Assembly: GCF_001194135.2 (NCBI RefSeq)
Contig: NC_068989.1
Span: 714,057-778,056 of the forward strand
Direction of reading: 5' to 3'
DNA length: 64,000 nt
DNA from: Octopus bimaculoides
Lineage: Eukaryota
Below the pieces are notes generated by a model that saw nothing but the letters and a program-made list of their open reading frames with translations, searched no databases and was not told where the DNA came from. Below are positions 22,001 to 55,948 of the stretch, one piece after another. The translations under genes and the position numbers were made by a program. Position 1 is the stretch's first letter. Each line of letters starts with the position of its first letter.

Positions 22001-25000
22001 AGTACCTCATGCACTTTGTCATTTTCAACTGTTTAATGTTCTATTTATGCAACAAGGCTATTCTCATTAAATTACATTTTATGACTCCTATTTTTGATAC
22101 AATAAATCTGAATTTTGCAATTATTAGATCAGCTTTTAAAAATTTCTAACCCTAACCCTATCTTTAAAATTAAATTTTGTGATTATGTTGTATTAACTTA
22201 TTGTCATTAACTCCTCTTCAACTCCTAATATGAAAACCTCCCATTTCATGACATTATCTTGCAAATATTTACTGTTTTACACTGGCATCCTCCATTTAAA
22301 ATTGACTCTGATATTTTCTTATTTCTTCTCTTTAGGAAGCTTATATTGCTGATCTTGATGCCAAGAGTGGAGCATCTCTTAAACTAACGATTCTCAATAA
22401 AGTAGGCCGGATTTGGACAATGGTTGCTGGAGGAGGTGCTTCTGTTATCTATGCGTAAGTTATTTGTTGTTTTATGTGATACAGCTTAATGTTTCCAAAC
22501 AAAATTGTTATTATTGTTATAGTCTTATATTTATCATTTTATAGAGATTTACTTAAAAATGAACTGCAGTCTTGAGTTAGGAGTTGTAATTTTCCATCAG
22601 AATGAAATACTGAATGCCTCTTGAAGCAACCGTAAAAAATGCAGATAAGAAATAACAGAAATAGTTTCATGAATAAGAGTTATGGTTTGATCTCCTATTA
22701 AAAAATGCTGATAATCAATTATTAAAAATTAATTGTGATGAAATATATTGTGACTGATATTTTTATAAAACATTACACTAGTTTGATAAAGAATGTGGTA
22801 TTTGCTACAACCAAGAATTGTTGAACTCCTTCTAAATTCCAATTCTATGTTGGACAACTTTTAAATATTTTCTTGATGCTTGCCTTCTTTCAGCGATACT
22901 ATTTGTGATCTGGGAGGAGCATCAGAGCTGGCTAACTATGGAGAATATTCAGGAGCCCCCAGTGAAATGCAAACCTATGAATATGCCAAAACTATTCTTA
23001 GTCTCATGACAGAGACCAAGCATAAAGAGGGTAAGTTCAATGATGCTTCTCTTGTAATCGCATCTATTCAAAGAAACTTTCAAAGTTAAAAGATTTCAAT
23101 AATTTCATAAATGAAAAAATCAGTCACAGTGTCTGCATATAATGTGTTCCTTCAGTTCCTTCATGCTTGAATAATTTTGGAAATTAAACCATAATTGTGT
23201 CTAATGTTGTACAGTAGTAATAACAGCCGAGCTCAGTGATTGAGAGGCTTGTTAAACTATATATTAGACATGAACGAGGGGAGATAACTGGTGCCTGAAT
23301 ATGCCCCACCCAAACAAATTAAAAGCAGACTGACTTGAGAATATTATATGGAATTGGTAATCTAATACCAATATCGCATCAGCACTTCTGTCAGCCACTG
23401 GATGTGTTTGATCGAATTCTTTTTGAGCTGCATCAGAATCTTTTAAACTTTTCAACATTCCATCAATTGTAAGTAATCCATGCCTGTGTTGCAAAAATCA
23501 TTGCTGAAACAATTGGAAATACTTGGCCCAACGCCCAAAGAAACTGGATTTTGATGTGGAGTTTGCCAATTACCGTTATATTGGGAAATCGGTAAAGTGC
23601 CAACTCTAAAGTTTCCGGTAAACTGAACACATCCTCCATTTAGTTAAACCTGAGTTTTTAGAACCAAAACTGTTTCTACTTTAAGGAATACCATAAACTT
23701 TACAGAAGTACTCCAGGTTTAATTTTTCTTGATCAATTGATAATTATTAGTTCTTAATAAATAAGATTAGTACTAGTTAGAGGAAATGCCATAAGTTTAT
23801 ATTGTATCAGAATGTAATTCTACTCTTGACACCAGCATTTAAGATTTATTTAGCAAGTAGTACATATTTTTGAATATTGAAATAGTTACTTTTGTTTAGT
23901 CTGTATCCGTGCTGGAAGACAAAAAATACTAACAGCCGGCTTGTGTGAATTTTCTGAAACTCCTCCCCTCGGCCCTTGGGGAAAAATTTTCCCAACAAAT
24001 TCTGATATTTATCAGAATCCACACTATGTGAAGCATATTTGTAGAAAATTTCATTAAAAGTATCTATTTTTGTGAAAGTGAAGTGAAGTGGGGTGGACAC
24101 ATCTGTGTAGGTATGTTTACCTCTTTGTAACACAATAAAGTGTTTTCCTAACCATTCATTGTGGATAAACATCCGATGGTGAAATGAACAGAACAACAAA
24201 TAGAAACTTGTGTTTATCATAATTTTCTTCTTTATTATTTATAATTATTTTCTTGCAGGCAAAATTCTTATTATTGGTGGTGGTATTGCTAATTTCACTA
24301 ATGTTGCGACAACATTCAAGGTTTGTATCTCAACATTGTTAATTTCATTTGATGATCGTATAAGATATAATTTATTGATTCAGAATTAAAGTTTCAAAAA
24401 TCAATTCTTCAGCAATTTTTGTATAAAATATAAAATTACTTTGCTGTAGTTGTACTGCTGCTATTCATTTTCTGCTATGCATAAAATTGAGATGTGCAAA
24501 TCGAAAAATGTTTCTTTGTTGGGATTTGAATCCAGGCCATGTTTGGGTAAAAGCTATTAAAGACTGAACATTTTCTAATCTTCAGTTGATTTTCAATGAT
24601 GGTTTCAACATAAATTTGTGTGAGTGAAGAGGTGAGAGAATGGGAGAGATTATAACGTAATAAAAACAATCCTGATGACCCTCAGTTGTTTAATCTATTT
24701 TTTTCATTTTATCATAAGCAATCACCAACCTTTTGAGAAACATTTTGTAAGATGTTTTATCTGTATTTCAATGGCAGTTTATATCTTAACACCAATGTTA
24801 TTTGTGGCCATGGCACTTGGCTCTAAACAGCCAAGTCCATGTTTCTCTAAATAGGTGCAGTGAAACAGATTGGTTTATTACTGTTGTGAAGCTGATTCAT
24901 TATCTTGTAGAGCAAAGTTAAATTCTTCCTCTCTGTAATAGATTTCTATTGAAGCCAAACTAAGATTTCTCTTTCTTAATGCCGTAAAGATAAGCATCAG

Positions 25001-28000
25001 CTTTGAAAATTCTTGTGATTCTGGAAAGAATTTGCATTAAAAATGGGGTAAAATGACCAAGAAATGGTTCATTTAATCCTTAAATTCCACCAAATCAGTG
25101 ATTTAGTATAATCATTAATTTGTTCACTTATGATTTTTTAGTCTAAATTGCATTTCTTAATCTTGAATGCTACTTATAAAGTACTAATTTTGCAACCAAC
25201 TTTCGCACCTCATGTGACTAATTTTCTCCATTTTTAACAACATATTAAACTGAACTTTATTGTCTTGACTTTGTAGGGAATTGTACGAGCTCTAAGAGAA
25301 TATCAGCAGAGATTGATCGAACACAATGTCTCCATCTATGTTCGACGTGGTGGACCTAACTACCAGGAAGGGTTGCGTATCATGAAAGAACTTGGCAAGT
25401 TATAACTCTGTACTAGCTCTGTCTTTGAGATGTGTTTTGTGGCTGTATGATTAAGAGGTTCACTTCTCCATCGACCACGTAGCTTCAAGTTCAGTCCTAC
25501 TGAATGGCACCTGGGGCAAGTGACTTCTATGATAGCCTAAGCCTACCAATGCCTTGTGAGGGAAACTGAAAGAAGCTCGTCATGTGTAATATCATTGTCA
25601 TAATCATTTCAAGGATGATTGGAAACAAGGGATGCTTGCTTGAATGAGAGTGATGCTTATTTACAACAATTGTGCAGTATCATGTGTACTCAACACTGGC
25701 CCCCCTCCACTTTCACCAATGGTTTATAGTCATGAGACATAACTTCACTAAATCTACCATTGTATACATAAATACATTTTGTAAATTCTTTTATCTTTTA
25801 ATTTTATTCTTAAGTACAAAAACAAAATTGACTTATTTCTTTAAATTTGTATTATTTTTTTTACAATTCTTTTGTTTCCTTTTTTTTTTTCAAGGTTCCA
25901 CACTTGGGGTTCCGATCCATGTTTATGGTCCTGAAACTCATATGACTGCCATTGTTAGCATGGCACTTGGCAAGAAAGACATTCCAACCACTCCACAACC
26001 TGTGCAAACTACTGCTAACTTTTTACTTCCAGGAGGGACAGTGAGTTTGTCTTTGTTTTTAATGGTTACCAACTATTTTAGTTCTCTTTTCTGTATAGTT
26101 TCCTCAGAGGAGGAAGGACAGCATCCATGAGCCCATGTCAGAGACCTGGACTGCGCTAGTAGATCCTTATGAATTCTTTTCTGAGGTGCCTATAAAAAAA
26201 AGGTACCACGTGATTAAGAACTGTCAAAAGGGTACCATATACTAGATGAGTGTAAAATAGGTACCATATTATACAGAATGGTAAAATGCATACCATGTGA
26301 TAGAGGACTGTAAATAGATTATGTGTAATAGAGATCTGTGAAATATCATCATCATCATCATCTAATATCTGCTTCCCATGCTGGCATGGATTGAATGGTT
26401 TGCCATTGTCTGTGAAGTAGTTGGAAGGGCATCAGGCTGTAGAAACCATGCCAGAACAGAGTGTACTGGGTTCTTTTTATGTTACATGGCACCTGTGTGA
26501 GTCCCAGTTGAGAAAAATGTTTTGAGTAATTTAAAATATGACCATCTGGAATTGTAAGAAAGAACTGTATGGAGAATTAGAATTGATTCTGCATAGCCAT
26601 TACTTAATAGACGTGCAGTATATCATCATCATATGTCCGTTTTTCATGCTGGCATGGGTTGGACGGTTTGACAGGATCTGGCCTGGCTGCATGTCTGTCT
26701 TGGCATGGTTTCTATGGCTAGATGTCCTTCCTAACACCAACCACATTACAGAGTGGACCGGTGCTTTTTATGTGACACTGGCACGGGGCACTTTTACATG
26801 GCACCAGCACCCATGAGCCTGTAAGATTAGGATCACTCAGCTGAAGAAGTATGTAACTTGGAATGCCGAGTTAAAATCCTCCATAACTGTGGTAAAATAT
26901 TTCATTTTAAAAACAAAACAGCTCCAAAACATTTTAGATTTATTAAACAAACAAACTACTACTGCAATTAGATTGTGGGTGATTGAGAACAGCTATGTAA
27001 GCCATGTGTATTTTTATATACATTTTTTCATGTTTGTAAGTATTGTTCCAGACGAATGTATGTTCACAACTTGATTACTGAACCAGTTCCACCTATTAAC
27101 TTTCAAATTTGTTTTAAATGGTTTTATTCCAGCCTCTGATATTTCACTGCCATTATACAATCCCACATCAAACAAATACAAGTCCAACATTATTCTATAT
27201 TTCTCTTTTATTTTTGTATTTTCTATTTGTTTTCATTTTTCAATTAATTATATTTTTGTTTTTCCTTTCAGAACATGCAGGTAATCCTTGCAGCTCCGCC
27301 TTCTCCCCCTCCCCTTTCTTTCTCTATTGGACACAGTAGCAAGCATGATTCCATTGCAATTCTCTTCGTTTCTTTTAGCTTCTGTCTCTCCCATGTTTAT
27401 GCTACTCTGCACTTCTATATTCATGATTGTGTTAGTGGTGTTGATGTTGTGATAAGTATCCCTGGTTTCTCTTCTCCATGGAATATCGATTATACAGAGA
27501 CACTTGACCTGAAGTATTGCGTGCGCACACGTGTGTGTGTGTGTCAGTTGGTAAATGTTCTGACTATTCTAAACACATTAGCTTTGAAAATTAAATAAAA
27601 CTGCTTCAAAGTGGAATGGAAGTCGGTAGATCTGGCTAGCCAGATGCTTATTTTTGTTCTCTACCTCTGATTACCATTTTAAATGGAGCTGTTTGCAGTA
27701 CCTGGGTGTCTCATCATCATCATCATCATCATTCAACGTATGTCTTCCATGCTGGTATGGGTCGGATGATTTAAGAGGAGCTGGAAAGCCTGAGGACTGC
27801 ACCAAACACCACTGTCTGTTTTGGCATAGTTTTTACAGCTGGAATGCCTTTCCTAATGCCAACCACTTTACAGAGTGGACTGTGTGCTTTTTACATGTCA
27901 CCAAGTAACTTGCCAGATCCTTTGAGGGGCAGCCAATTTTTAGCTTATGTTAACTGACAGGTATTAGTAAAAAAACTTATGCAAGACTTCTACACTGCTT

Positions 28001-31000
28001 CTCTGTTCAAAATTCTATGGCTACATGAGGCATTGACCAAGCCAAGTGTATGAGAGCAGAAACTTGCTGAAATGTGAGGTTTGACCATTCCTGAACCTGA
28101 GACTGTTTGTGATAGCAAAATGAATTGCTTAACCTCCTCACAAAGTTGTCTAACCCCAAGTCAGCTCTGGTTGAACCAACCTATGATCAAAAGCATTCCA
28201 ATGGTGACCATTCCATCTTTGTCTTATCTGCATGGAACCCAAGACCACATTAGCCAGTGTGACATAGATGATAGTGTAATTTCTAGGTAGGTATGGCTAC
28301 TCTTTCTAGCAGCTTGACTGACCACATAGAGGGGAAAAAACGTGTTTGTATTTTCAATATGTTTTGACCATCTTTTCCTTAAAAAATGTTGATATTAATT
28401 CATTATGAAATCTGTTAACAAGAACTGGTTTGAACGCTATTAAAACATTTTGCAATTGGTTAAATACTTCATATTTTAGTGCCAAATGGCACAGAAGTCT
28501 TTAGCAATAGATGTCTTTATTAACATATGACTGGCCAAAGGTCTTTCAGCAAACGATGTCTTGTAGTTGCCAGTGATAAGTTATTTCTCTCCAGTAATCT
28601 AGATCTGTCACTTGAGGTTACAGTAATAAATGATTTCTCTGACATTTAATGTAAATTATTTGTCACTTTGAATTTACCTGCCATTGAATACCTAACAGCT
28701 GAGGATCAAGGAATAATCTGTGATTGTTTTTATTGTAATTTCTTATATTTTTTAATGAATGAATTTTCACAAAAGCGTTACAACTAGTCACTTAATGAAG
28801 TAATTACAGCCCATGAAATGAAGGATCTGCAATTTGTATCTTGTAACCAGCTTTGTGCTATATTCCTGGTTCAAAGCAAGTCTAGTTCATCTGACCAAAT
28901 ATAAAGATGATACAATTCCCTGTTGAAATCAAAGAGTAGGAGGAACACCATAGTTGAGGAATGTTGCATTATTTTGTACTGTGAGCTCAAACTCCAACAA
29001 ACTGGTTTGCTATCCAGGAGGATATGACTTATCTGTTCAATTGCAAAGATTAGTATAATCTCTCTCTCAGTAATAGCAGGTGATAAACTAGGATGCTGAT
29101 TATTATTAAGATTAGTGTATTCATGAGTTTTATAATTGTGCTAAGATTATAGTATGAATTAATCTTGAGTTAGCATTTTTTTTTTTTTGTGGCTAATAAC
29201 CTTTGACTAGATTCGGAGCTTGGTTCTCTTTTTTTCCCCATCAACCTTTTAATGCTTTGTTGTCCCAGCATCATGATGCATGTGTAACCTGAATGAACTG
29301 AAGAGTGATATTAACCATTTTATTCCTTCGTTCCCTTATTATTTTCTTTGGAACAAGAGAATAGAAAACTTAAAATTAAAGAAACCAATGTTTTTATTTT
29401 CCCCCCTCAGGGTGGAGGGAGACAGTCAAGGAAATTAATTTGCTGGCTAAATTATAGAATTAATTTTAATTCCACTTGATTTTGAACTAAGATTCTTATG
29501 GGTTGATTATAAATACCTTTCACACAAACATTTACTGTGTATTTAGCAAGAAATTTAATTTTTGTTATTGCCTGGGTGTGGTTAAGAACTTGGTTTCCCA
29601 ACCATGAGACCTTCAGTTCAATCCTGCTACACAACATCTTGAAATTCTTCTACTATAGCCATCAATTGACTAATGGTTTGTGAATGAAATTGGTTGATGG
29701 AAACTGTGTTGAAGCCTATTGTTTGTCTTTACATTAACATCTTTTGAGAAAAGATGGGTCTGTAACTTGGCAATACAATTAAGAGATTGCTAAAGAAAAA
29801 AAGTCCCAGGTTTCAAAATAAGTACGGGGGTGGTGGTGATAGAATTAATTAGTAATTAATAGGTATTTGTTAATCAATGTGGGTGTTATTGACTTCAGAA
29901 GAGGAAGAAATAGAGATTATACCATTCCTATATTTCCCAGCAAAGTAAATGGAAGTTGCCACTGGGAATCAGAATCCAGTTCTGTATTCAGCTCAAGAAT
30001 TTTATACTTTCCAAAGGCCACTTCTATAGAAATCTCAAGCAACATGCATTTCCCCATTTTTCATTATTATACAAAATTATTTTGGAGATTCTAACAACTG
30101 CTTGCACATTTAGTTACTTATATTTAGCTTCCATGTTTGATTATTTCTAATTTTTCTTGTGTTATTTTCTGTTTTGCTTGATATTCATTTTGTGTGTTAA
30201 TTGTTCAATCAATCTTCAATAAGTAGATTTTAAATTGTATACTAATTAACACCTCCCACCCCTGGGTTTTGTTTGTGCCTTTTGATGTTTTTGTTTTGCT
30301 TTTGTTTAAACAAGAGCAATGTTTTTTGCTAAATTTTTGTTGTCAGCATGCATACAAATTTTATATTGTGAACATTTTTTTTTATTCCTAACAAAAGTCT
30401 GTGTACATTGAATGTTTAAGTAAATCATCATCATCAAAACTTTATATACTTATTAATTACTAAATTATTTTAGGCCACTAACCTCTTAGGAACGCATTTA
30501 GTATTTGCACTCATTGACAAATTGATGTGCATAACAGTGCATAAGATTTTATTAGTTTTGCACTTTTATTACATTATTTCACAACAATGTGACCCAATTA
30601 TCATCATCATCATCATCGTTTAACGTCCGCTTTCCATGCTAGCATGGGTTGGACGATTTGACTGAGGACTGGTGGACCAGATAGCTACACCAGGCTCCAA
30701 TCTGATCTGGCAGTTTCTACAGGTTTTTTAAAATCTCTTATCATAGACACAGATTTATATTACGCTTGGTTAATAGAAATATAGAAAAAGTAATGGAGAA
30801 AAGCGCATTCTAATTGTATTCTATAAATATTGGATAACATACCTTGAGGTTTTGAATGCTTCTTCATCCTTTTCTTGTACACTTTTTATCAAGGGTTGCT
30901 TTGGCCAATCTTATGGAAGTGCAGCCTGTTTAACTACTGAGGCAATGCAATAACTACATTCACATAGATCATCATCATCATTATCATCAATGATTAATGT

Positions 31001-32004
31001 CTCTTTCCTATGCTGGCATGTGTTGGACGGTTCGACAAGAGCTGAAGAGCTGCCCAGGCTCCATGTCTGTTTTTGCATGGTTATTATGTGCTCTTGCACA
31101 ACACCAGCACTCATGACCTGCATGATTAGGGTTGCTCAGCTGAAGAGAGATGCAAGGACCACCATGATTTCATGATTTCACTTAGCTTGATGTGTCTTTC
31201 TCAATAAACAGTCAACCACCAGAAGTCTTGCTCCCTTGTCATCCTCTCTGCGAGGCTCAGCGTCTGACAGTTCCTTATTAGACAAATGGTTTTTGTAACT
31301 GATACACTTTCTGTTACTACAGGATTGGGAGCTGCTGGTCAGCTGGGCAGAGTAATGAATCTGGGTCAGAAGTATCAAATTGTTGGATAAGGTGATGAAA
31401 GTCATGGAGAGGGTCATGGCCCAAATAATTGGGGAGAGTTAGCTGAGATGAAATGCAGTTTGGTTTTGTGCCAGGGAGAAGCACCACTGATGCTATATAT
31501 CTGGTAAGGCTGTTGCAGGAGAAATACTTGGCTTTTGTTGACATGGAGGAATCCTTTGACAGGGTCCCCCAATCCCTTATCTGGTGGTCAATGTGGAAAT
31601 TAGGGATAGACGAGTGGTTGGTGAGAGCTGTACAAGCTATGTACAGGGATGCTGTCAGTAAGGTGAGGCTTGGCAATGAGTACAGCGATGAATTGATTTC
31701 CCTCAAGCCAACTGAAATCCTAGTCATGGCTGATACTGGTGTCATGCAAACGGCACCCATGCTAGCAGCAGGCAAAAGCACCTGTCACACCCTTGAAGTG
31801 ACTGGCGTTAGGTGGTGCATCCAGCTCTAGAAGCTATGACAAATCGGACTGAAGTCTGGTGCAGCCCCTCAGCTTGCCAGCTCTAGTCAAACAGTCTAAC
31901 CCATGACAGCATGGACAAATGAACATTAAATGATGATGATGATTATATAGATATGGTGCTCCAGCATGGCCAGAGCCTTTAGGCAGTAACATAAAAATAA
32001 ATAA

Positions 32005-32035
<31 letters not shown>

Positions 32036-35000
32036 TTCATGCCCTATTCAGTTGTTTAGCTTTGCTTTTCAATGAATTGTTTGTTTTACTAACCATACAG
32101 TTACATAATTAATTACCGTACATTTTAATTAAGATATGTTATAAATTTTTGAAATACGGGTTTTGTGTGTGTGTTTTCTTTGGGCTTAAGCTTTTTGTTT
32201 TTAATCCTACATTATTTCAAATTTCTTTTCTTGGTAAATTAGAATTGGATTTACTTAAATTGTTAAATAATTTCTCTATTTCAAATGTGCTGCTTTTTTG
32301 TAAAGAAACTATAAACCAATTTCTGTTGTACCCTTATAGAATATATTGATTCTCACAAACTTGTTGCTTTTGTATCGAAAGTTCATTTTTTTGTTTTGTT
32401 TACCAAAGTTTTTAAAGCTGTGACATTTATAAGACTATTCATAGAAATAATTAAATAAATATTTTTTAAAAAATAGTTTAAAAAATTACTTTCAAATACA
32501 TTAAGTAATTTGTAAATGGATTTGTTTGCTTTATTAGAATCTTGCAAAAAATATTTATATGGAAATGTTTGAATAGAAACTGAAAAAACAAAAAAACTAG
32601 TTTGTGTTCCTGAGAAATAGTTTGAATCGAGGATATTTTCATTCAAGGCACGATTAATTACCAGACAAAAGAGCTGTTCTTGCAACTTGTTTCATAGGAT
32701 GTGTTTTCTGGGTTTTATTTGGTTTTTTTCCATAGTTCTTTTCATATTCTTGTAGCTATTGTGTTCTTGACTCTAAGATTTTCTTAGATTTTAATTCTGC
32801 ACCATAATACCATAGTAACACAACCCACACTACAGGAAAATAGATTACATGACTAAAATGGTTCCTTAAGACAAGAATATCTGATGAACCTTATCAATAC
32901 AGCTATCTACAAGACCCAAAACATTCCAGTGACAACACTGAGAAAAACAAACCAAAATAATAAAAAGGACAAAAATCCCAAAATCCCAAATCTTCAGATC
33001 TGTTTGACAACAAATGCGAGAAAGTTCTCCAAAAAAGTTAACAAGAAAAGAATTTTTTTTTAAAAATTCTCCACACCAAAGTTAAGAAAGAACTTACTAG
33101 ATCTATGAACTAAAATTTATATTATCAAAAAATAAACTAAACTGATTAGAACTACCAGTGAAGTCATTCTTTTCCTTTTTTCAAATATATACATATATAT
33201 ACATATATACACACACACACAGCACCCCTTTACTATTGTAAACTGATACTGTTATTTAACAGATGATCAGCTTGGAAGTACACCAATGATTTCTTTTTGT
33301 TTCTATTAACAGAGTACATTCTGTCAAGCTCAGCTTGGTGTAAGTCAATTTTGTATTTTCTTTCCTTTGCATGATGTAATGACTCTTAGTTGAACTACTA
33401 ATGTTTTTGGTTTGAATCTGGTAGCCTCCAATTAAGCACTGTCTTGTCTCGAAAAGTCTCTGTATTTTGTGTGAAAACCTTCAATCCTTGGCCACTTGAT
33501 GTTGTTGCTTTTTGTTCCTATGTCTGTTGTTTCCAGGTAAGTAGTTTTGTTTGTGGTGGTTCATGTTATGAATAAAAAAACTCCCCTTACACAACAGTGA
33601 TTAAAGAAAGGACTTTCAATCTAGTTCCTGTGTTAAACACACAACACTTTGTAGTGTGTGTCTCCGTCCTTCACTTGTAAACAAACAGCAGCGTAGTTTG
33701 GCTGTTCCCCTCCATCCAAGCACTTTTGACTCCCTTGCCTCTCCTCCACCTCCTCTCATCACCCATGCTTGTGTGTCCAAGTCCCGAGCCTGCACTAACC
33801 TCCATCACCAATCCTTCCTCCTTCCACAGAATCTCAATTGTCTTTCATTTCTTTGTTGCACTTGCTTTTCCTGCAGCCATCGACTTACAGGTGTTTCAAC
33901 AGAATGCCAATGGCATCCGTCTTCTTCTTATTGTTGTTGTTGTTGGAGGGGCTGGGAAGAGGCTGGGCTCAGCTTCTTACTCAAAATAATAATAATAGTA
34001 AAAAGAGAAAAAAAAAACCCCAGACAATTATGGATGCCCCAATCATAATAGTCTCTTTCTGCATGTATATATTTGTGTTTCATATGTATGTGTTTGTGCT
34101 TCTATGAGTATTTGTGTGTGTGTGTGTGTGTGTGTATACATGAAAATAACCCAAAAGTCCACCTGACCTTTTTCTGGAAAACATTTAAATGCTGTGTTGT
34201 GGGACTCTCTCTATATTCACTTTAGATGACTCTGGACATACACATAGGATAGATACAATGTGCAATAATAGAAGACTCTTGCCAAAATGGTGCCATGTAT
34301 CAGGGTGGGACCTAAACCATATGGTTGTTGTATAATGAACTTGTTGATCAGCCATATATAAAACTGGAAATATTGATATCAGTTCTGGACGAACAGATTA
34401 TTTCCAAGGATGAATTATGGAAACATTGAGTTTTACTTAGGAGAAAAATCTTATGTATTTTCTGAAAGCATCAAAAAACTTAAGATCTCTAAGTGGGTGG
34501 CCATGAGAAGGAAGTGGTGATCCTTTTGCCTTTTTTAAGGTCATTTCAATTGAAATTGAGTAACAAATGTTTCAATTTTATGTTGAAATTAAAAACTTTC
34601 ACCACAATTACTTGAATAACTACTTTCAAGTGGAATCTATCAAATGTCATTCTTTCAATTGTTGTTGGACTTTTAGATGCTGTTTTCTTCATTACAGGTT
34701 TGTATTGTGACATAGGCTTCCAAGGAATGTTTGTTTTTATATAATGTGTTTGTGTGGGTGTAGTTTTTATTTGCACTCTGCTTCAGTTTGTATAGTTATA
34801 TGCACACACACAGCTCTCTAGTTGCAATTCATTTTTGCCAACAATGCCATATCGTTTTCCAATCACTGCTTGAATACTGATTATACCTCAGGTTGAACAT
34901 TTAAAATGTATTCTGTTGGTTCCCCAGGTTACAGATAATAGACCATGATTAGTAACTTAGTAACATTGTAATCAGAGATATTTGTAGCACATAAAAGATT

Positions 35001-36236
35001 ATTTACTTTTAATTTCTTGAAGTATGAAATAAATTAATTTGTATTATTCAACCGTTTGTACTATTCTTATTCTCAGGAACTTTAAATTTAACTTTTATCT
35101 TTAGATTCCATGGATTTTTCACTGAAATCAATGAACAAGACATTGGCCCGACTGCATTTGTTGATTCTTGTGTAATCTTACCTGAATTTCCTCCTCAAGT
35201 TCTGCATTCATTAATAGGTATTTTATTTTCTACCTTCTCTTCAGCGTTCACCAATATTGAAGCGAAAATCATCAGGTGATCTAAGCGCCAATTCCAGCAA
35301 TTCCAAGATTGCTCACCATGACATGGCCAATGATGTAGAAACAAAGCAGCAGCATGGTCTCTTCTCCAAACAGACCAAAGCTATTGTATATGGAATGCAG
35401 CAACGGGCTGTACAAGGGATGCTGGACTTTGACTATGTCTGCTCCAGAGATGAGCCTTCAGTTGTTGCTATGATGTACCCCTTTACGTAATTATCTTTTT
35501 TTCAATTCAATTTTTCTTTGTTATTAAGAGTAAGGAAGGTGGTGGGCGAACAGAATCCCAGAATCCTTAGTGGCATTTCTTCTGACTTTATGTTCAGGAA
35601 TTCAAATTCCTGCAAAGTCAGTTTTGTGTTCCATCCTTTCAGGGTCATAAATAAGATAAGAACCAGTCAATCACTGGGGGTTGATGGAAGTGGCTAAACC
35701 CCTTCTGCCAAAAGTTCAGGCCTTCTGTCTATTGTAGAAAGAACAAGTAATGGGATTGCCATCTAATATTTTGTTATAGCCTTTCCTTCTTTCCATCATA
35801 TTCTTGTTCCTTGCACCTTCCCATCCATTCTGGCACTTCTAATATCATTTCTCTCTCTTTTGGTCCCCCCCTCTCAAAAATTTCTCGCTTTGCTGTCATC
35901 ATTGTCCCCTCTCAATGCCCACCTTGGTCTACAAGCTTTGACTACTGACCACTCTTGACACATACCCTGTCCTAGGCGCTTCTCCCACCTACTCTTCCCA
36001 CTGTGAACGGTTTGGTTGAAGAAACAGAGAGTGCTGTGTGGTTGTGGAGTCCCTCTTGTCCCGTTTCTAGTATTGCTACCATGAGAAAATTATCCCAGTA
36101 TATTTTGTAAAGTGGTTGGCAATAGGAAAGGCATGTAACCATAGAAACTAGACCAAATAATATGTACCAGCACCAGTTTATCAGGCTGATCCAACCTGTG
36201 CCAACATGGAAACTGGTTATAAAATGAGAATATGAA

Positions 36237-45200: not shown

Positions 45201-48200
45201 TGCCTTTGTCAGGAATCAATAAAATAAAAATATTAGTCAAATGGTATTGATTATCTCCACATCTCTCAAATTGATGGCTTTGTGCCTAAATTAGATACAA
45301 TTATTATTGTTATTATTATTATTAAACAAATTTCATTCTGTTTAAAGTATTTCCTATCATTGAATTCCAGTCGACCCACGACTCTCTTTTTCTCCCTCTC
45401 TCCTTCCTCTCTTTCCTCACTCTTCTCCCTCTCTACTTATTCTTTCTTTCACTAATACATGAAAGGTTTTTCTTTCTATTATTCAACTTCCAAGACTTCC
45501 AAAATATGCCACCAAATTCATCGAGATGTGCCTGATGGTGACGGCTGACCACGGACCGGCTGTTTCTGGAGCACACAATGCTATTGTCTGTACACGGGCA
45601 GGCAAAGACTTGGTCTCAGCTCTAGCTTCTGGACTCCTTACTATTGTAAGTATATTCTTACAGTCACACATCATCATCATCATCATCATCAACAACACCA
45701 TCACTCTCGTTATTCTCATCATCATCTTACATTTATCTTTCATTTGTAATTTTTTTTACCCTTTTTCCATTTTATATCTTCCACTTCCTCTAATTTAACA
45801 TCTTTGATATTATTACCTCCATCCATTTCACTAGAAACGAATTCTGACCCATGTTTTGCTTCTTGTGGCAGGGTGATCGCTTTGGTGGGGCACTAGATGC
45901 AGCTGCCAAGCAGTTCAGTGAGGCCTACGACAGTAGCATGATTCCAATGGAGTTTGTTAACTCTATGAGGAAAAAGGGGAAACTTATCATGGGCATTGGA
46001 CACCGTGTGAAATCCGTGAGTAGTCTTGAGTTTTAGTTACATTCATGTGTACATATATTTCGAAATTCTTTACACACACACACACACACACACATGTATA
46101 TAACACAATATAATTATCAGGATACACTCTCGTTTACTGAGATTACATCAGAGGTGTGTAATTCAATCCTCATGTGCATAAACAACATGCAATTATCTTG
46201 CATCAAAATACAAATCAGAACATTTTCTGTTATTGATTGAAGATTGATGAAGGTAGCTTGTGAATATGGTGAGTGAATTACACAACTTTGGTGCAATCTC
46301 ACAAAATGGTACATAGTCTATCTTGGCAATTGCATTATGTTATAATAATTCAACCAAGCTGGCATTGTGTGCTACCATTTATATATATATATATATATGA
46401 AAATACAGAGTGACTCTTAGAGACTGTCGTATTCCTGGGAAATTCATCAGGGAATCTCATCCGTTGCCTGGTTTGGAGTGGTGGAACTAGGCATGAACAA
46501 TCGCAGATCTTCCATGGGGTGGGGGTGGGGGGGAATGGCTTTGTCCAAACCTGCANNNNNNNNNNACTAGGCATGAACAATCGCAGATCTTCCATGGGGT
46601 GGGGGTGGGGGGGAATGGCTTTGTCCAAACCTGCATCTTAAAGAAGTTTCCAGGTGCAGATTTATCATCTCACAACACCTACAAAAGCTGTTCATCTCAT
46701 TGAAATATTTACTAAATTCACGAATACGACGTCTCTGTTTAAATCTTTTCAGTTGAACAACCCTGACATGCGTGTAGTGATCTTAAAAGATTATGTGAAG
46801 CAACACTTCCCTGCAACTCCTCTGCTTGATTACGCATGCGAAGTGGAGAAAATAACCACCTCGAAGGTAAGTTGGATTCTGGATCAAAAGAGATATGCTG
46901 TAGTATAAGGTTTAACTGAGGTCTGGATCAAAAACTTAGGTAATATAAGGATTAACTAAGACTATCCAGGCAGTGAGTAGACAAAATCTCCCAAGGTGTT
47001 TAAAATCCAAGAACAAGCAGGGCAGATAACTTATCAAAATTTTTGAAAAAGACTCTGCAGATTAAAATCGATTTGGTTGTTTGAGAGGTAAGAAGTAAAA
47101 ATCACAAATTTGTTTCAGTTGTATTAAATCTCCTTGGTGAAGTATATTCTTCTCAGCTGGTGATACAAAGTGATTAATATTACATGTATAAATAGAGAGA
47201 GAGAGAGAGAGAGAGTGGGGTGTGTAGTGACACTGATTATGAATATCTACAATCCAGTTTGTATGAATATCTACAATCCAGTTTGTGAGGCAAGTTTCCG
47301 AGATGAATGTCCATTTTCCATGCTGGCATGGGTTGGACGGTTCAACTGGGGGTCTGGGAAGCCAGGAGGCTGCACCAGGCTCCAGTCTGATCTGGCAGTG
47401 TTTCTACAGCTGGATACCCTTCCTAACGCCAACCACTCCGTGAGTGTAGTGGGTGCTTTTTACGTGCCACCGGCACAGGGACCAGAGGAGGCTGGCAATG
47501 GCCACGATTAGTTGGTGCTTTTCATGTGCCACCAGCGCGGAAGCCAGTCAAGGCGACACTGGCATCAGCCACATTCGGATGGTTCTTTTTACGTGCCACC
47601 GGCACGGGGATCACAACTACAATCTCCATTTGATTTTCATTTTGATGTTGATGTACTTGACTCAATAGGTCTCCTCAAGCACAGCAGGTTGCCCTACGAT
47701 CCAAGGTAGTTTTGAATGGGCTGGGGCTGGTTATGTGAAACTGATGTAGGATACAGCCATGAATTCACTTTATTTGCCGGGTCTTCGCAGTCACAGCATA
47801 TCTCCAGAGGTCTCGGTCTTTCGTCATTGTTTCTGCATAACTTTCTACTATTCAAGATGTTAGGAAATTGGAATTGTTTTCTCTCATGTGAGTTCTTTGT
47901 TTTATAAAGATGAGAGGAACATAATTGGTTGGAGTTCTATTCTAATTCTCACATAAAGTGTTATTGTTATGATGATGATGATTGTTCTAGTATTTTCCTT
48001 CAGGGAAATAAATGTTGTTTCTATTTTGATTTCAGAAACCTAACCTAATTTTAAATGTCGACGGCTTCATTGGTGTTGCAATGGTTGATCTTTTCCGGAA
48101 TTGTGGATGTTTCACACGGTGAGTTAACTGTGTGTGTGTGTGTGTGTGTGTGAACATGGGAATAGCAGTTGTCTTCATATGAACATTAGATTCTGCTGAC

Positions 48201-51180
48201 TTTGATGTTGCGACAGTTTTGTTCAGGTGAGAAAAGTCAGGTTAAAGGATGGGTGGACACATTTGCTGGGCTGAAGTTGTTCAATGGAGTTGGAGAGGAT
48301 TGAGATTTCTAGGTTGTGTGTTGGTAGGACGTGGTGGAGGGGGTCGAGACTAGAATAATTTGTGAGAACTGTTCAGTCAGTTGGTTTGGAGTTGGAGTGA
48401 ATGTTTTGATCCTGGAGGTAAACTGTTGCTCATAAGGGACCCCTAACCAGTGTTGATCCTCTATCAATAGCCTTGTCTAATATCAGGTGCCAAAAATGGG
48501 CTTCTCAAAAGTTTGTTCGTACTGGGACACTTGTTGGGGACTGAGGTAGAAGAGAATTCAGGGTATTGAGCCAACTTTGAGGACAACTACCAGAAGTTCA
48601 AGTGTTTGGGGATCCTGTCCTATCTGTGAACCTCAACTGAGAGACTTTCATGACTTGTACACTTTGGTAATCGGTGGCACTTTACGAGAATAGTTGGAAG
48701 CAACTCCTCTTGAAACTGTGTCATCCTTAAACTGGGGACTTTCCTGATCTGAAGACTTGCAACAAAACAAGAGAACTAAAAACATCCAAAGACTGGGTGG
48801 TAGCGTTAAAGCAGGTGACATGTTTAGGCACCAGAAAAATAATGATTGTCTTATGCAAAGTCCTTTCTGTGTTGACATTTGAGAGAAATGGGCCTCATTT
48901 GTAGATGGGAAGTCTCTCTCTCTCTCTTAAAACAGTTCTCTAACAACAGCAGGTAAATTTGCAAGGTTATCAGAAAGATAAGTTTTGCAGGAGAGAAAAA
49001 AATATATCAAATGGGTGGGGGTGGGGTCAAAAGGAGAAGAAAAAAAAGGAGGAAAGATAATTGAATTGTGACTCTTTGTGGTCTTTCAGCTAATTAACTC
49101 CATTAATGGCCCTTGCTATATTTGAATCTCCATTGATATTAAAACTACATGTATCAGGTGACATTCTATATATTATTTCTCATGTTGTCTAATGTGAAGT
49201 AACAAAACTCTCCAACATCGAAGAGACAGTTGTAACTTCATCATTTCTAACTCGAATCCCAGGCAAGAACAGTTTCTTCTCCTTAATTTACCAAAACAGA
49301 AAGCTGCAACCATGGATATGGTGTTAAAAAGTTTGAGGCTGACAAATGCCTTACGAGTGAAGTTCGGGGAGATGGAAACTTTAAGAAGTCACTTGTATAA
49401 GTACGTAATAGCAGTGTAGGATAACTCGGCAGATTCAAACAATACCCAATGGTTACATCCAAATTCATTTGAGTTATCTCCCCTCACGTCGGTATCTACT
49501 CTACATTTAACATTATTGAAGCCAGTAAAACGACCGACAGCTCCTCTAGACCACAAAGATTTACCTACAATTAACTAGCTTCCCCAGCTAACACCTCAGA
49601 CACCATTTTTATATTCCAGTACCATTTAGTGTTCTGCAAGTGACTCTGGTTTCCATTTTATTTATACAAGAATACTATTAGCCAGTTGGATAAATAGCAA
49701 GGAAAACAAAAGGTGATTTAATTTTGAAATAAACTGGTGGAAACGGTGCTCCAATCTGGCCTTTCATATGATGGCATAATCAAAATAAACACCTCAAGAT
49801 GTTATATGGAAGGTAGCTGTCATCAGGAAATTAAATTTTAAGTAATGTTATGAAAGAAAAGGTTTCTTTGCTAGGATGTAATGTTTTTGGAATTCTTTAG
49901 AATGTATTTTATAGGAATTTCAGGTGGTGAGCTGGGAGAACCATTGTGCCTATAAAAGAAAGGATTCATCATCATCATCGTTTAACGTCCGCTTTCCATG
50001 CTAGCATGGGTTGGATGATTTGACTGAGGACTGGTGAAACCGGATGGCAACACCAGGCTCCAATCTAATTTGGCAGAGTTTCTACAGCTGGATGCCCTTC
50101 CTAACGCCAACCACTCAGAGAGTGTAGATTCAGTCTATTGGAATTCATGATTTAGTTTGTGATAATTTCTTTCTTAGGCTCAAGATACTTCGTTGATTGA
50201 TTTGATTTTATTACTTTATTGATCATTTATTGATCAGAGAGCACTAAAAGACAAGATTTGGTTTTGGTATTTGATGTTAGGAAACTAGAAATAGATTCCT
50301 CACTCTCCCTCTGTCAGAATTGATTTAGCTATAATATGATTAATTAATTTAGCTATAATAATAAAACTATAACTATTTATTGCGAATATTTTTCTTTTTT
50401 TATTAATTTCACCAGAGAGGAAGCTCAAGAATATGTGGAAATTGGTGCTCTGAACGGACTCTTTGTGCTTGGTCGTAGCATGGGCTTCATTGGTAAGTTT
50501 TTTGGAAAGTCAACGATAGAGGACATTTGTTTTGAGAAGTTGCAGAATATTTGAATGAACCAGTTTCATGAACCTTACTCTCATCCTCTATATATGTGTG
50601 TGTGTGTGATATATATATATATAATATACCCCGGCAAAGAAAGTGAGATCACAGCTGTAGTCTGCACCAGTGTCGCAAAACCAGCCCATTTAAAAAGTAC
50701 CTTTGAATTGTTGGGTGACATTCCGTGCTTGAGGAAATCTGTTGAGTCAAGTAAATCAAAATCAAATGGAAATTCTAGTTGTGGCCTGCAATAAGCACCA
50801 TTCATGTGTGGGTTGCTACCAGAGCCGCCTGGCTGGAAGCCGTCAGCAACTGTAAAGACTCAGCAGAGAACAACGAGAATTGCTGGTCCTTGCATCTGGC
50901 ACCATGAGGAACCTGTAGTAATGTTGAAGGTGAAGTTATATTCAAAATAATTTCAATTTCCTTCCATAAATTTAGAAAAAACAACTTGTACTATTCTTAG
51001 GTTTTTGATCACATCACTATTTGCCTAACAAATACTTTTTGCATNNNNNNNNNNATATATATAATTGTTTGTATTTTAGGTCATTATTTGGACCAAAAGA
51101 GATTGAAGCAAGGTTTGTATCGTCACCCATGGGATGACATCTCCTACATCTTACCCGAGAGTCTACATGAAAGTCTTTGA
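3786..51180 (+). CDS. ACLY: ATP-citrate lyase (ATP-citrate synthase), whole spliced gene span, 29 coding exons, about 1090 aa
   Basis: The exons below join in frame from MSAKAISE to [11 protein letters not shown]. They include the family motifs [55 protein letters not shown] (phospho-His), [17 protein letters not shown] and LNVDG. Exon lengths sum to 3273 nt, which is divisible by 3. Confidence 0.97.
6190..7549 (-). mobile_element. Helitron, antisense in ACLY intron 1, spanning an N gap
   Basis: Minus-strand 5' end a|TCTATATATATAAAAATGAGAATG..(GTCT)n at 7549. PIF1-type helicase C-terminus [14 protein letters not shown]...[12 protein letters not shown] at 6400-6515. 3' hairpin acccgggcaacgccgggt, then CTAG|t at 6190. 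Confidence 0.85.
6516..7139. other. Assembly gap (N run)
   Basis: N bases. Confidence 1.
8620..9031 (+). mobile_element. Repeat family A copy with internal tandem subunits
   Basis: Repeated gcacgtaaaaagcacc units, then the family A 3' end with a gatgatgatg tail. Confidence 0.85.
9290..9412 (+). CDS. ACLY: ACLY exon 2 ([17 protein letters not shown]...EIE)
   Basis: tttcag / gtaggt; 123 nt; phase 0-0. Confidence 0.96.
10381..10575 (-). mobile_element. Repeat family A copy
   Basis: catcatcatcattgtttaacatccactttccatgctggcatg...; the 5' part resumes at about 10700-10845. Confidence 0.85.
11022..11110. repeat. Long (CT)n microsatellite
   Basis: Directly visible. Many shorter (TA)n, (CA)n, (TAG)n and (CAT)n tracts occur across the window. 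Confidence 0.95.
12381..12527 (+). mobile_element. Repeat family A copy
   Basis: gtggttggcattaggaagggcatccag...aaatgatgatgat. Confidence 0.75.
13040..13372 (-). mobile_element. Degenerate non-autonomous Helitron-like relic
   Basis: (ACAG)n followed by tctttatatata, like the 5' end at 7500-7550. The 3' end is not resolved. Confidence 0.3.
14563..14755 (-). mobile_element. Repeat family A copy
   Basis: catcatcatcat...ggatgcccttcctaatgccaaccac. Confidence 0.75.
15451..15513 (+). CDS. ACLY: ACLY exon 3 ([21 protein letters not shown])
   Basis: tttcag / gtacat; 63 nt. Confidence 0.95.
16925..17023 (+). CDS. ACLY: ACLY exon 4 (AEEYYVCIY...[14 protein letters not shown])
   Basis: ttaaag / gtaaat; 99 nt. 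Confidence 0.95.
18200..18288 (+). CDS. ACLY: ACLY exon 5 ([29 protein letters not shown])
   Basis: aactag / gtaagt; 89 nt. The sequence is divergent, but the phase (0 to 2) fits both neighbours. Confidence 0.88.
18488..19309 (-). mobile_element. Foldback mariner derivative with about 160-bp inverted arms and transposase N-terminal relics on both strands
   Basis: Arms at about 18488-18649 and 19107-19263. Minus strand: [12 protein letters not shown]...SGRPETS and [26 protein letters not shown]. Plus strand: [13 protein letters not shown] flank at 19310. Confidence 0.8.
19625..19704 (+). CDS. ACLY: ACLY exon 6 ([10 protein letters not shown]...FTYLEINPL)
   Basis: ctctcag / gtaagt; 80 nt. Confidence 0.95.
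20122..20740 (-). mobile_element. Penelope-like retroelement 3' fragment enclosed by about 97-bp inverted repeats
   Basis: Arms at 20122-20216 and 20646-20740, with TA on both flanks. Minus-strand relic [45 protein letters not shown] resembles the PLE GIY-YIG C-terminal region. Confidence 0.6.
21254..21387 (+). CDS. ACLY: ACLY exon 7 ([16 protein letters not shown]...[13 protein letters not shown])
   Basis: gtttag / gtaagt; 134 nt. Confidence 0.96.
22336..22454 (+). CDS. ACLY: ACLY exon 8 ([18 protein letters not shown]...[11 protein letters not shown])
   Basis: ctttag / gtaagt; 119 nt. Confidence 0.96.
22894..23030 (+). CDS. ACLY: ACLY exon 9 (DTICDLGG...NYGEYSGAP...KHKE)
   Basis: tttcag / gtaagt; 137 nt. 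Confidence 0.96.
24259..24320 (+). CDS. ACLY: ACLY exon 10 ([20 protein letters not shown])
   Basis: ttgcag / gtttgt; 62 nt. Confidence 0.96.
25277..25394 (+). CDS. ACLY: ACLY exon 11 (GIVRALREY...[17 protein letters not shown]), ends at a GC donor
   Basis: ttgtag / gcaagt; 118 nt. Only the GC donor keeps the frame with exon 12. Confidence 0.92.
25895..26040 (+). CDS. ACLY: ACLY exon 12 ([20 protein letters not shown]...[10 protein letters not shown])
   Basis: ttcaag / gtgagt; 146 nt. Confidence 0.95.
26196..26345. repeat. Degenerate minisatellite with units of about 29 bp
   Basis: Recurring aaa(ag)gtacca....ga..gt units. Confidence 0.6.
26617..26855 (-). mobile_element. Repeat family A copy (another partial copy at about 26345-26470)
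   Basis: catcatcat...catgctggcatgggttggacggtttgac... Confidence 0.75.
27272..27280 (+). CDS. ACLY: Candidate 9-nt ACLY linker micro-exon (NMQ)
   Basis: tatttttgtttttcctttcag|aacatgcag|gtaatc; phase 0-0; about 88 nt upstream contain no AG. Confidence 0.5.
27708..27905 (-). mobile_element. Repeat family A copy
   Basis: Same motif set as the other copies. Confidence 0.75.
30598..31172 (-). mobile_element. Two repeat family A copies (30598-30722, 30967-31172)
   Basis: catcatcatcgtttaacgtccgctttccatgctagcatggg... Confidence 0.8.
31270..31690 (+). mobile_element. RTE-clade LINE reverse transcriptase fragment
   Basis: [60 protein letters not shown]. Confidence 0.9.
31745..31943 (+). mobile_element. 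Repeat family A copy directly downstream of the RTE RT fragment
   Basis: Ends in aaatgatgatgatg. Its position after the RTE RT suggests it shares the LINE 3' tail. Confidence 0.75.
32800..33170 (+). mobile_element. Possible highly decayed Penelope-like RT-to-endonuclease linker fragment
   Basis: Frameshifted [30 protein letters not shown]-like reading with stops. Confidence 0.3.
33313..33339 (+). CDS. ACLY: Candidate 27-nt ACLY linker micro-exon (STFCQAQLG)
   Basis: tttctttttgtttctattaacag|agtacattctgtcaagctcagcttggt|gtaagt; phase 0-0; no stop; TGCATG at 33368-33373. Confidence 0.55.
35245..35486 (+). CDS. ACLY: ACLY exon 13 (linker [11 protein letters not shown]... to [28 protein letters not shown]...YPF)
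   Basis: cttcag / gtaatt; 242 nt. The 3' part is highly conserved; the 5' boundary is inferred from phase 0 and the pyrimidine tract. Confidence 0.9.
36523..36575 (+). CDS. ACLY: ACLY exon 14 ([17 protein letters not shown])
   Basis: ttccag / gtaagt; 53 nt. Confidence 0.95.
36810..37010 (-). mobile_element. Repeat family A copy
   Basis: catcatcatcatttagcatctggcagg... Confidence 0.65.
37182..37297 (+). CDS. ACLY: ACLY exon 15 ([12 protein letters not shown]...NFASLRSAY...YPQ)
   Basis: ttttag / gttcga; 116 nt. Confidence 0.94.
38453..38557 (+). CDS. ACLY: ACLY exon 16 ([13 protein letters not shown]...IIGPAT)
   Basis: ttatag / gtacgg; 105 nt. Confidence 0.95.
39005..39315 (+). mobile_element. 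tRNA-derived SINE family B, near-complete copy
   Basis: gtgtggtaagaagctggct...ggtttcagtcc...aaagccttgtgagtgg...cagcatggccgcaatcaaatgactgaaacaag. Confidence 0.75.
39490..39581 (+). CDS. ACLY: ACLY exon 17 ([17 protein letters not shown]...LYRPG)
   Basis: aaacag / gtaagg; 92 nt. Confidence 0.96.
39946..40050 (+). CDS. ACLY: ACLY exon 18 ([16 protein letters not shown]...EGVAIGGD)
   Basis: tttcag / gtgaga; 105 nt. Confidence 0.96.
40704..40785 (+). CDS. ACLY: ACLY exon 19 (YPGTTFPDY...MIVLLGE)
   Basis: gtttag / gtaatc; 82 nt. Confidence 0.95.
41570..41680 (+). CDS. ACLY: ACLY exon 20 (VGGVEEY...[18 protein letters not shown])
   Basis: cctcag / gtattt; 111 nt. Confidence 0.96.
41730..42732 (-). 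mobile_element. Two repeat family A copies (41730-41812, 42533-42732)
   Basis: The second copy is nearly identical to those at 30598 and 49966. Confidence 0.8.
43039..43166 (+). CDS. ACLY: ACLY exon 21 (VQFGHAG, catalytic phospho-His codon at 43051-43053)
   Basis: ttatag / gtaagt; 128 nt. Confidence 0.96.
43291..43384 (+). CDS. ACLY: ACLY exon 22 (KVYENLV...[12 protein letters not shown])
   Basis: ttcaag / gtatgt; 94 nt. Confidence 0.95.
43447..43645 (+). mobile_element. tRNA-derived SINE family C (another decayed copy at about 35545-35745)
   Basis: ggcagaatcgttagc...gagttcaaattctgcc (B-box-like)...actggggtcgatgtaattgac. Confidence 0.7.
44700..44940. repeat. Degenerate C-rich minisatellite (cactgagccct-like units)
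   Basis: Repeated cac(t)gagccc/caagccc/cactcac motifs ending about 55 nt before the exon 23 acceptor. Confidence 0.6.
44996..45150 (+). CDS. ACLY: ACLY exon 23 ([20 protein letters not shown]...SLLWFQR)
   Basis: tcacag / gtaact; 155 nt. Confidence 0.96.
45495..45645 (+). CDS. ACLY: ACLY exon 24 (LPKYA...[12 protein letters not shown]...SGLLTI)
   Basis: tccaag / gtaagt; 151 nt. Confidence 0.96.
45872..46015 (+). CDS. ACLY: ACLY exon 25 (GDRFGGALD...GIGHRVKS)
   Basis: tggcag / gtgagt; 144 nt. Confidence 0.96.
46753..46866 (+). CDS. ACLY: ACLY exon 26 (LNNPDMRV...VEKITTSK)
   Basis: tttcag / gtaagt; 114 nt. Confidence 0.96.
47305..47790 (-). mobile_element. Repeat family A copy with a longer 5' extension
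   Basis: Family A motifs plus an extension that recurs inverted at about 50630-50820. Confidence 0.75.
48036..48118 (+). CDS. ACLY: ACLY exon 27 ([13 protein letters not shown]...CGCFT)
   Basis: tttcag / gtgagt; 83 nt. Confidence 0.96.
49966..50127 (-). mobile_element. Repeat family A copy (young subfamily)
   Basis: catcatcatcgtttaacgtccgctttccatgctagcatggg... Confidence 0.8.
50416..50492 (+). CDS. ACLY: ACLY exon 28 (EEAQEY...[11 protein letters not shown])
   Basis: caccag / gtaagt; 77 nt. Confidence 0.96.
51080..51180 (+). CDS. ACLY: ACLY last coding exon ([32 protein letters not shown])
   Basis: Acceptor ttttag; TGA at 51178-51180. Confidence 0.96.
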
Positions 51181-55344: not shown

Positions 55345-55948
55345 NNNNNNNNNNNNNNNNNNNNNNNNNNNNNNNNNNNNNNNNNNNNNNNNNNNNNNNN
55401 NNNNNNNNNNNNNNNNNNNNNNNNNNNNNNNNNNNNNNNNNNNNNNNNNNNNNNNNNNNNNNNNNNNNNNNNNNNNNNNNNNNNNNNNNNNNNNNNNNNN
55501 NNNNNNNNNNNNNNNNNNNNNNNNNNNNNNNNNNNNNNNNNNNNNNNNNNNNNNNNNNNNNNNNNNNNNNNNNNNNNNNNNNNNNNNNNNNNNNNNNNNN
55601 NNNNNNNNNNNNNNNNNNNNNNNNNNNNNNNNNNNNNNNNNNNNNNNNNNNNNNNNNNNNNNNNNNNNNNNNNNNNNNNNNNNNNNNNNNNNNNNNNNNN
55701 NNNNNNNNNNNNNNNNNNNNNNNNNNNNNNNNNNNNNNNNNNNNNNNNNNNNNNNNNNNNNNNNNNNNNNNNNNNNNNNNNNNNNNNNNNNNNNNNNNNN
55801 NNNNNNNNNNNNNNNNNNNNNNNNNNNNNNNNNNNNNNNNNNNNNNNNNNNNNNNNNNNNNNNNNNNNNNNNNNNNNNNNNNNNNNNNNNNNNNNNNNNN
55901 NNNNNNNNNNNNNNNNNNNNNNNNNNNNNNNNNNNNNNNNNNNNNNNN
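55345..55948. other. Assembly gap (N run)
   Basis: N bases. Confidence 1.

Follow-up and report, generated by a model that had tools for sequence, protein, structure and literature searches.

ATP-citrate lyase (ACLY) makes cytosolic and nuclear acetyl-CoA and is regulated via phosphorylation of a disordered linker. The human gene holds a short cassette exon in this region, exon 14, with the peptide QDSVPSPRSL. Its 10 amino acids include S481, and its splicing is regulated by ESRP1 (Supplee et al. 2024, PMC11260853). A second group of described systems is formed by the cassette micro-exons of animals (3-27 nt), which are often neural and often have an Rbfox site, (U)GCAUG, downstream. When bound to (U)GCAUG in the intron downstream of an exon, Rbfox proteins enhance its inclusion (PMC10551640). 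Here we describe a 27-nt stretch at positions 33313-33339 in the ACLY gene of Octopus bimaculoides, within a 64,000-nt segment of contig NC_068989.1 (positions 714,057 to 778,056 of the forward strand; the window, in whose numbering all octopus positions are given). This stretch is very likely a genuine cassette micro-exon of octopus ACLY, one of two in the intron that interrupts the linker region.

The octopus exon resembles other animal micro-exons in its length, in the preservation of the reading frame and in its strong flanking signals, as well as in its probable site in a disordered region beside a modification motif and in a conserved downstream UGCAUG. It differs from them in having no UGC upstream of its acceptor, and in that inclusion is the main assembled form in larvae of the cuttlefish Sepia esculenta. 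With vertebrate exon 14 it shares the expression of both long and short forms and a location beside regulatory phospho-sites. However, exon 14 lies C-terminal to an Akt/PKA-type site, whereas the octopus exon lies N-terminal to its motif, and the Ser/Pro-rich peptide of exon 14 contrasts with the hydrophobic octopus core TFCQAQL.

The ACLY gene is complete in the window, with 29 coding exons on the + strand (3786-51180) that encode 1090 aa. It was located by tblastn and then refined; the query was a human ACLY sequence, which served as probe only. Coding exon 12 (25895..26040, + strand) ends in phase 0 with FLLPGGT (26020-26040) and is followed by gtgagt. Coding exon 13 (35245..35486, + strand) starts in phase 0 after ttcag, its first 10 residues being encoded at 35245-35274 and beginning with CGT, and carries an RSP…KRKSS motif of the SP…basic-x-S phospho-type. 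The linker intron between them (26041..35244, + strand; phase 0), with 9.2 kb the longest of the gene, falls between the two halves of the enzyme, the N-terminal ATP-grasp/citrate-binding one and the CoA-binding one, and houses both alternative micro-exons. As both flanking boundaries are in phase 0, the 27-nt insert preserves the frame.

Splicing the gene with and without the 27-nt exon reproduces two annotated proteins. The model that includes 33313-33339 is identical, residue for residue, to XP_014784570.1 (1099 aa), and the model that joins exon 12 directly to exon 13 is identical, residue for residue, to XP_014784572.1 (1090 aa). The exon is already known from RefSeq and UniProt isoforms: STFCQAQLG, which separates T440 from R441 of the 1090-aa form, occurs in O. 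bimaculoides, in O. sinensis X1/X2 and in O. vulgaris (X2, and UniProt A0AA36B6Q9), and each species has sister isoforms that lack the insert. The second micro-exon of the intron is a 9-nt cassette at 27272..27280 (+ strand; AACATGCAG), which encodes NMQ and is bounded by ttcctttcag upstream and gtaatcc downstream; it is contained in isoforms P0250, P0251, P0241 and P0245. The four protein lengths in O. bimaculoides (1090, 1093, 1099 and 1102 aa) correspond to neither exon, NMQ added, the 27 nt added and both, as do the lengths of 1089, 1092, 1098 and 1101 aa of O. sinensis isoforms X1-X4. All four combinations of inclusion and skipping are annotated in Octopus.

An earlier note on this DNA, made from its letters alone, had proposed a cassette micro-exon here, and the three Octopus species indeed have both inclusion and skipping isoforms annotated. 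That note had let its proposal depend on whether any isoform carries STFCQAQLG; among mollusc ACLY isoforms the insert is present in Octopus and, as ATFCQAQLT, in Sepia. The 9-nt NMQ exon (27272-27280) had escaped it. In the literature we found no paper describing the 27-nt exon, and database records are silent on its conservation, regulation and function; ACLY also goes unmentioned in the text of a 2026 preprint that treats tissue-specific splicing, O. bimaculoides included.

The 27-nt exon (33313..33339, + strand; AGTACATTCTGTCAAGCTCAGCTTGGT) is stop-free, in phase 0 at both ends, and reads STFCQAQLG. Its 3' splice region (33290..33312, + strand) combines a pyrimidine tract with a taacag acceptor (gatttctttttgtttctattaacag, last base 33312), and the acceptor AG is preceded by 33 nt without another AG. 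The 5' splice site (33340..33345, + strand) is the consensus gtaagt. The tract, acceptor, exon and donor had been read in the same place by the earlier note. Position weight matrices trained on the 28 introns of this gene give the acceptor 10.4 bits, which places it at the 82nd percentile among the true acceptors, and the donor 7.0 bits, equal to the median true donor; the NMQ exon scores 13.2 bits at its acceptor and 6.6 bits at its donor. Both micro-exons pair a strong pyrimidine tract and CAG acceptor with a GTAAGT or GTAATC donor. The 27-nt exon thus shows the features by which cassette micro-exons are recognised, namely a length of 3-27 nt, canonical AG…GT borders (cag before and gtaagt after the exon), a kept frame and no stop.

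This combination of signals exceeds chance expectation. In the 44 kb of introns, only two frame-preserving, stop-free candidates of ≤60 nt reach the scores of the micro-exons, and these are the 27-nt and the 9-nt exon themselves, at thresholds that are post hoc, being taken from the candidates, and with matrices built from 28 sites only. The minus strand of the 64-kb window holds zero candidates at the same thresholds, and dinucleotide-shuffled intron sequence yields 0.02 candidates on average. Two readings, a chance pseudo-exon and an exonised repeat, were rejected; against the repeat, the region of the 27-nt exon matches the O. sinensis locus only once, whereas the repeats around it do so several times.

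Conservation beyond Octopus is seen in Logan RNA-seq contigs of two other cephalopods, which join GGT to RSP through NMQ-ATFCQAQLT (P0122, P0123), through NMQ (P0124, P0260) or directly (P0125, P0126, P0258). The source runs of P0123 are S. esculenta larvae, as given by the run accessions in the data-availability statements of larval transcriptome papers. In S. esculenta transcripts three of the four forms were seen (both exons, NMQ only, neither). The orthologous Sepia exon reads GCG ACT TTC TGT CAG GCC CAA CTT ACT (ATFCQAQLT) and also has a gtaagt donor. Across the seven core codons for TFCQAQL, octopus and Sepia differ by 4 synonymous and 0 non-synonymous changes, and residue changes are confined to the two edge codons, a pattern that points to selection on the protein. 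Past RSP..RKSS, the constitutive linker for the most part cannot be aligned between octopus and Sepia, so that no other part of the linker is as well conserved as the 27-nt micro-exon. Octopuses and cuttlefish parted on the order of 270 million years ago, and the aligned codons indicate that the TFCQAQL core has been kept since before this divergence. The earlier note had stressed that the insert adds Ser, Thr and Cys next to the phospho-motif; Thr and Cys lie in the conserved core, whereas Ser is not conserved and is Ala in Sepia. Within the three Octopus species the 27-nt exon shows one synonymous change with its splice signals intact; the NMQ exon, too, differs synonymously at one site in O. 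sinensis and O. vulgaris.

Some further features of the intron and of the Sepia transcripts were noted. At 33530-33542, 197 nt downstream of the 27-nt exon, an acceptor abuts a consensus donor (tttccag/gtaagt) in the form of a recursive splice site. This arrangement is unique in the window (0.10 expected), and its 100-nt window is among the most conserved across the Octopus species (99%); as such it is not conserved in Sepia (aaatgagtag). A (TATACA)n/(CA)n microsatellite at 33186-33222, ~90 nt upstream of the exon, differs in length across the three Octopus species. Short interspersed repeats at 26622-26788, 27711-27903, 30597-30722 and 31774-31949 each have several copies elsewhere in the O. 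sinensis/O. vulgaris ACLY loci. One partly spliced Sepia contig (L022, 1390-1737) has both micro-exons joined upstream and retains the intron after the 27-nt exon; this single contig hints that removal of this downstream intron is a slow or regulated step. Another Sepia isoform, P0265, present on one contig, has 36 extra residues (DHPVNREATDPAQVQDDGPPPKKIKSLLESDFLKQD), among them a basic PPKKIK stretch, where exons 9 and 10 meet; for these, octopus intron 9 (23031-24258) offers only a non-significant, stop-interrupted match at 23306-23344.

Micro-exons occur in the orthologous phase-0 intron of other molluscs as well. Lottia has a 9-nt exon for LMQ (CTGATGCAG; L019, 5476-5484), Physella a 15-nt exon for IFFPG (L020, 7877-7891) and Argopecten a 15-nt exon for SIMSL (L021, 14373-14387); all forms seen in Lottia and Argopecten include the exon. 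Transcripts of bivalve-like species carry VVQ or IVQ at the same junction. The inserts are short, mostly hydrophobic and placed directly before an (S/T)P..RRxS motif. Although all of these exons share the intron, only the 9-nt xMQ exon looks orthologous to cephalopod NMQ, and this orthology between Lottia and the cephalopods is plausible. No STFCQAQLG-like exon was found outside cephalopods among the loci compared, which included a snake and L001-L004 (a gastropod-like relative, whose orthologous intron measures 416 nt, and 10 kb of bivalve-like sequence). A protein search with a 139-aa linker query returned short exon-fragment matches from other animals, none of them with the insert.

The intron downstream of the 27-nt exon contains TGCATG at 33368..33373 (+ strand; intron positions +29 to +34), an Rbfox-type (U)GCAUG and candidate splicing enhancer. 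The distance of 28 nt given in the earlier note agrees with this, counted between the exon end and the motif. O. sinensis and O. vulgaris keep the motif too, which counts for little when the intron as a whole is 92% identical. In S. esculenta, TTTGCATG stands at +21 to +26 of the downstream intron, compared with +29 in octopus. It was read from P0307 (locus L022), a partly spliced transcript that runs from the micro-exon into this intron (gtaagtctggtttctttgtTTGCATGttc). Otherwise the Sepia and octopus introns are unalignable, with best local scores of 21-24 against a null of 21.4 ± 2.8, and the lack of any alignment above the null rules out a longer conserved intronic element. An apparent TTGGCCAC…TGT block shared by the two introns was rejected as non-significant (score 21 vs null 21.4). 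Through Sepia, the position of TGCATG is conserved beyond background. The 9-nt exon is followed by a GCATG of its own (aGCATG; 27343..27347, + strand) at +63, conserved in the three Octopus species, which again is weak evidence at 92% background. For an Rbfox-type enhancement of 27-nt exon inclusion, the motif and its position point to roughly even chances. An Rbfox-type protein bound to UGCAUG ~20-30 nt into the downstream intron would promote inclusion, and its binding may help U1 to recognise an exon whose length falls short of what normal exon definition needs.

Several points weigh against this picture of a conserved and regulated cassette, and they are best taken together with the alternatives. 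In O. bimaculoides itself the evidence for the 27-nt exon consists entirely of RefSeq computational models, and conservation among the three Octopus species says little because the linker intron is already ~92% identical to O. sinensis and O. vulgaris; windows over the exons reach 95-97%, which ranks them roughly in the upper quarter to tenth among windows of the intron. With the flanking intron so well conserved throughout, this comparison does not discriminate between a functional exon and low-level splicing noise or an annotation artefact without function. Such noise is nevertheless very unlikely, as the orthologous exon occurs in independently assembled transcripts of two other cephalopods, with 7/7 core amino acids conserved despite four synonymous changes, and as inclusion predominates among the assembled Sepia larval forms. 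There, the double-inclusion 1106-aa form is found on 71 contigs and the 1097-aa and 1094-aa forms on 2 each, although such contig counts are not quantitative and are no measure of percent spliced in. A different fate would follow from the second AG at 33313-33314, which the earlier note had named as a competitor: its use would shorten the exon to 25 nt and shift the frame, making it a "poison" exon by which nonsense-mediated decay would reduce ACLY output. This we regard as extremely improbable, since the AG scores -0.6 bits as an acceptor against 10.4 for the upstream CAG, is absent in Sepia, where the exon starts with GCG, and is used by no isoform; all annotated and assembled isoforms have the 27-nt form. 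Descent of the octopus exon and vertebrate exon 14 from one exon of the bilaterian ancestor deserves next to no credence. Both are short in-frame cassettes of the same disordered linker near phospho-sites, and the 30-nt vertebrate exon mentioned in the earlier note is confirmed by human exon 14 (PMC11260853) and by snake ACLY isoforms X1 and X2, which differ by DTSPSPRPVQ. However, the snake exon (L007 20143-20172, phase 1-1) is flanked by the phospho-exon (TPAPSRTASFSE…KKAKHTVSS) on one side and the KATTLF exon on the other. It belongs to another intron, which is in phase 1 and downstream of the phospho-motif; octopus has no intron there, its exon 13 running unbroken from RSP…KRKSS to YPFT. 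The snake intron after FLLNASGSSS (phase 0, 390 nt), orthologous to the octopus linker intron, holds no STFCQAQLG-like exon, and DTSPSPRPVQ and STFCQAQLG have no sequence similarity. Differing in intron, phase, side of the motif and peptide, the octopus and vertebrate cassettes are convergent, not orthologous. Of the earlier note's "independent or ancient", both halves hold in part: the octopus exon is independent of the vertebrate one, and ancient within the coleoid cephalopods.

The regulatory part of the picture meets a more serious rival. The 27-nt exon may be real and its TGCATG incidental, with inclusion set by a Srrm/eMIC-type neural programme, by ESRP-like factors or by splice-site strength; we hold this to be a credible possibility, though short of probable. 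Over both strands of the window TGCATG occurs 42 times against 41.4 expected, which is no enrichment. In Physella, the 300 nt that follow the 15-nt exon of the same intron are free of GCATG, and in Lottia the nearest downstream GCATG lies at +191. The predominance of inclusion in contigs from whole Sepia larvae fits near-constitutive use as well as regulated use. On the other hand, the motif recurs <30 nt from the Sepia donor in an otherwise non-aligning intron, and the 9-nt exon likewise has its GCATG at +63. At a + strand density of 0.34-0.76 per kb, any one donor has a chance of roughly 1-2% of a match within ~30 nt; the case for Rbfox comes down to one short motif in two lineages, which in the test lineage would arise by chance with this frequency. 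SRRM4/eMIC regulation has as its signature a UGC-containing enhancer just upstream of the acceptor. The sequence upstream of the 27-nt exon, tacaccaatgatttctttttgtttctattaacag, contains no TGC, and none is found upstream of the 9-nt exon either (within 40 nt of each acceptor), which speaks against this branch of the alternative. In favour of the alternative, vertebrate exon 14 is under ESRP1, not Rbfox (PMC11260853). At the protein level, an effect of the octopus insert on phosphorylation or partner binding is something we infer, and the analogous exon 14 has so far revealed no functional difference between its isoforms (PMC11260853).

For the encoded insert, the context suggests a role in regulation. 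By alignment to human ACLY, STFCQAQLG probably lies in the disordered linker, roughly at residues 440-486; in one chain of a solved structure (6hxh) and in the B chains of the split entries 5tde and 3mwd, the query match begins only past the linker. The RSP…KRKSS motif appears to correspond in position to the vertebrate T447/S451/S455 cluster (human TPAPSRTAS(455)). Inclusion of the 27-nt exon would insert STFCQAQLG directly N-terminal to this motif. We hypothesize that the hydrophobic TFCQAQL alters the engagement of the adjacent phospho-motif by kinases or partners, rather than catalysis.

Retention in cephalopods, together with independent short cassettes in other molluscs and in vertebrates, suggests functional relevance of isoform-specific tuning of the linker. 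A wider proposal, which we put forward only tentatively and consider rather doubtful as a whole, would make the phase-0 linker intron of mollusc ACLY a recurrent hot spot of micro-exons, separate from vertebrate exon 14. It would hold a 9-nt xMQ exon common to cephalopods and Lottia, along with hydrophobic exons of 15-27 nt that are specific to coleoids, Physella or Argopecten, with repeated selection for a splice-tunable phospho-linker and a conserved Rbfox-type enhancer in cephalopods. As far as the literature was searched, the comparative picture (coleoid conservation, a positional UGCAUG, and convergence with exon 14 at a site that recurs in molluscs) is unpublished and of modest interest. 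The 27-nt exon offers a clean, conserved test case for Rbfox-type control of micro-exons in a lophotrochozoan. It also illustrates that reading sequence alone can recover real micro-exons, as both of them and nothing else pass the splice-site filter.

Elsewhere in the gene, the intron after exon 11 (25394/25395) is apparently a GC-AG intron (CTTG/gcaagt), where the gastropod-like relative L001 has G/gtaagt. The O. vulgaris record P0244 (1062 aa) terminates in …GFIGKFFGK, which matches read-through of the exon 28 donor as it stands in the window (50493 onward), and is probably an intron-retention model. Runs of N, marking assembly gaps, lie in introns and flanks at 2922-2931, 6516-7139, 8849-8858, 46556-46565, 51045-51054 and 55345-55948. 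The AT skew switches sign at ~52 kb of the window. Downstream of ACLY, an intronless open reading frame of 410 aa (60079-61311, + strand) encodes ankyrin repeats and a MYND zinc finger and is ANKMY2-like.

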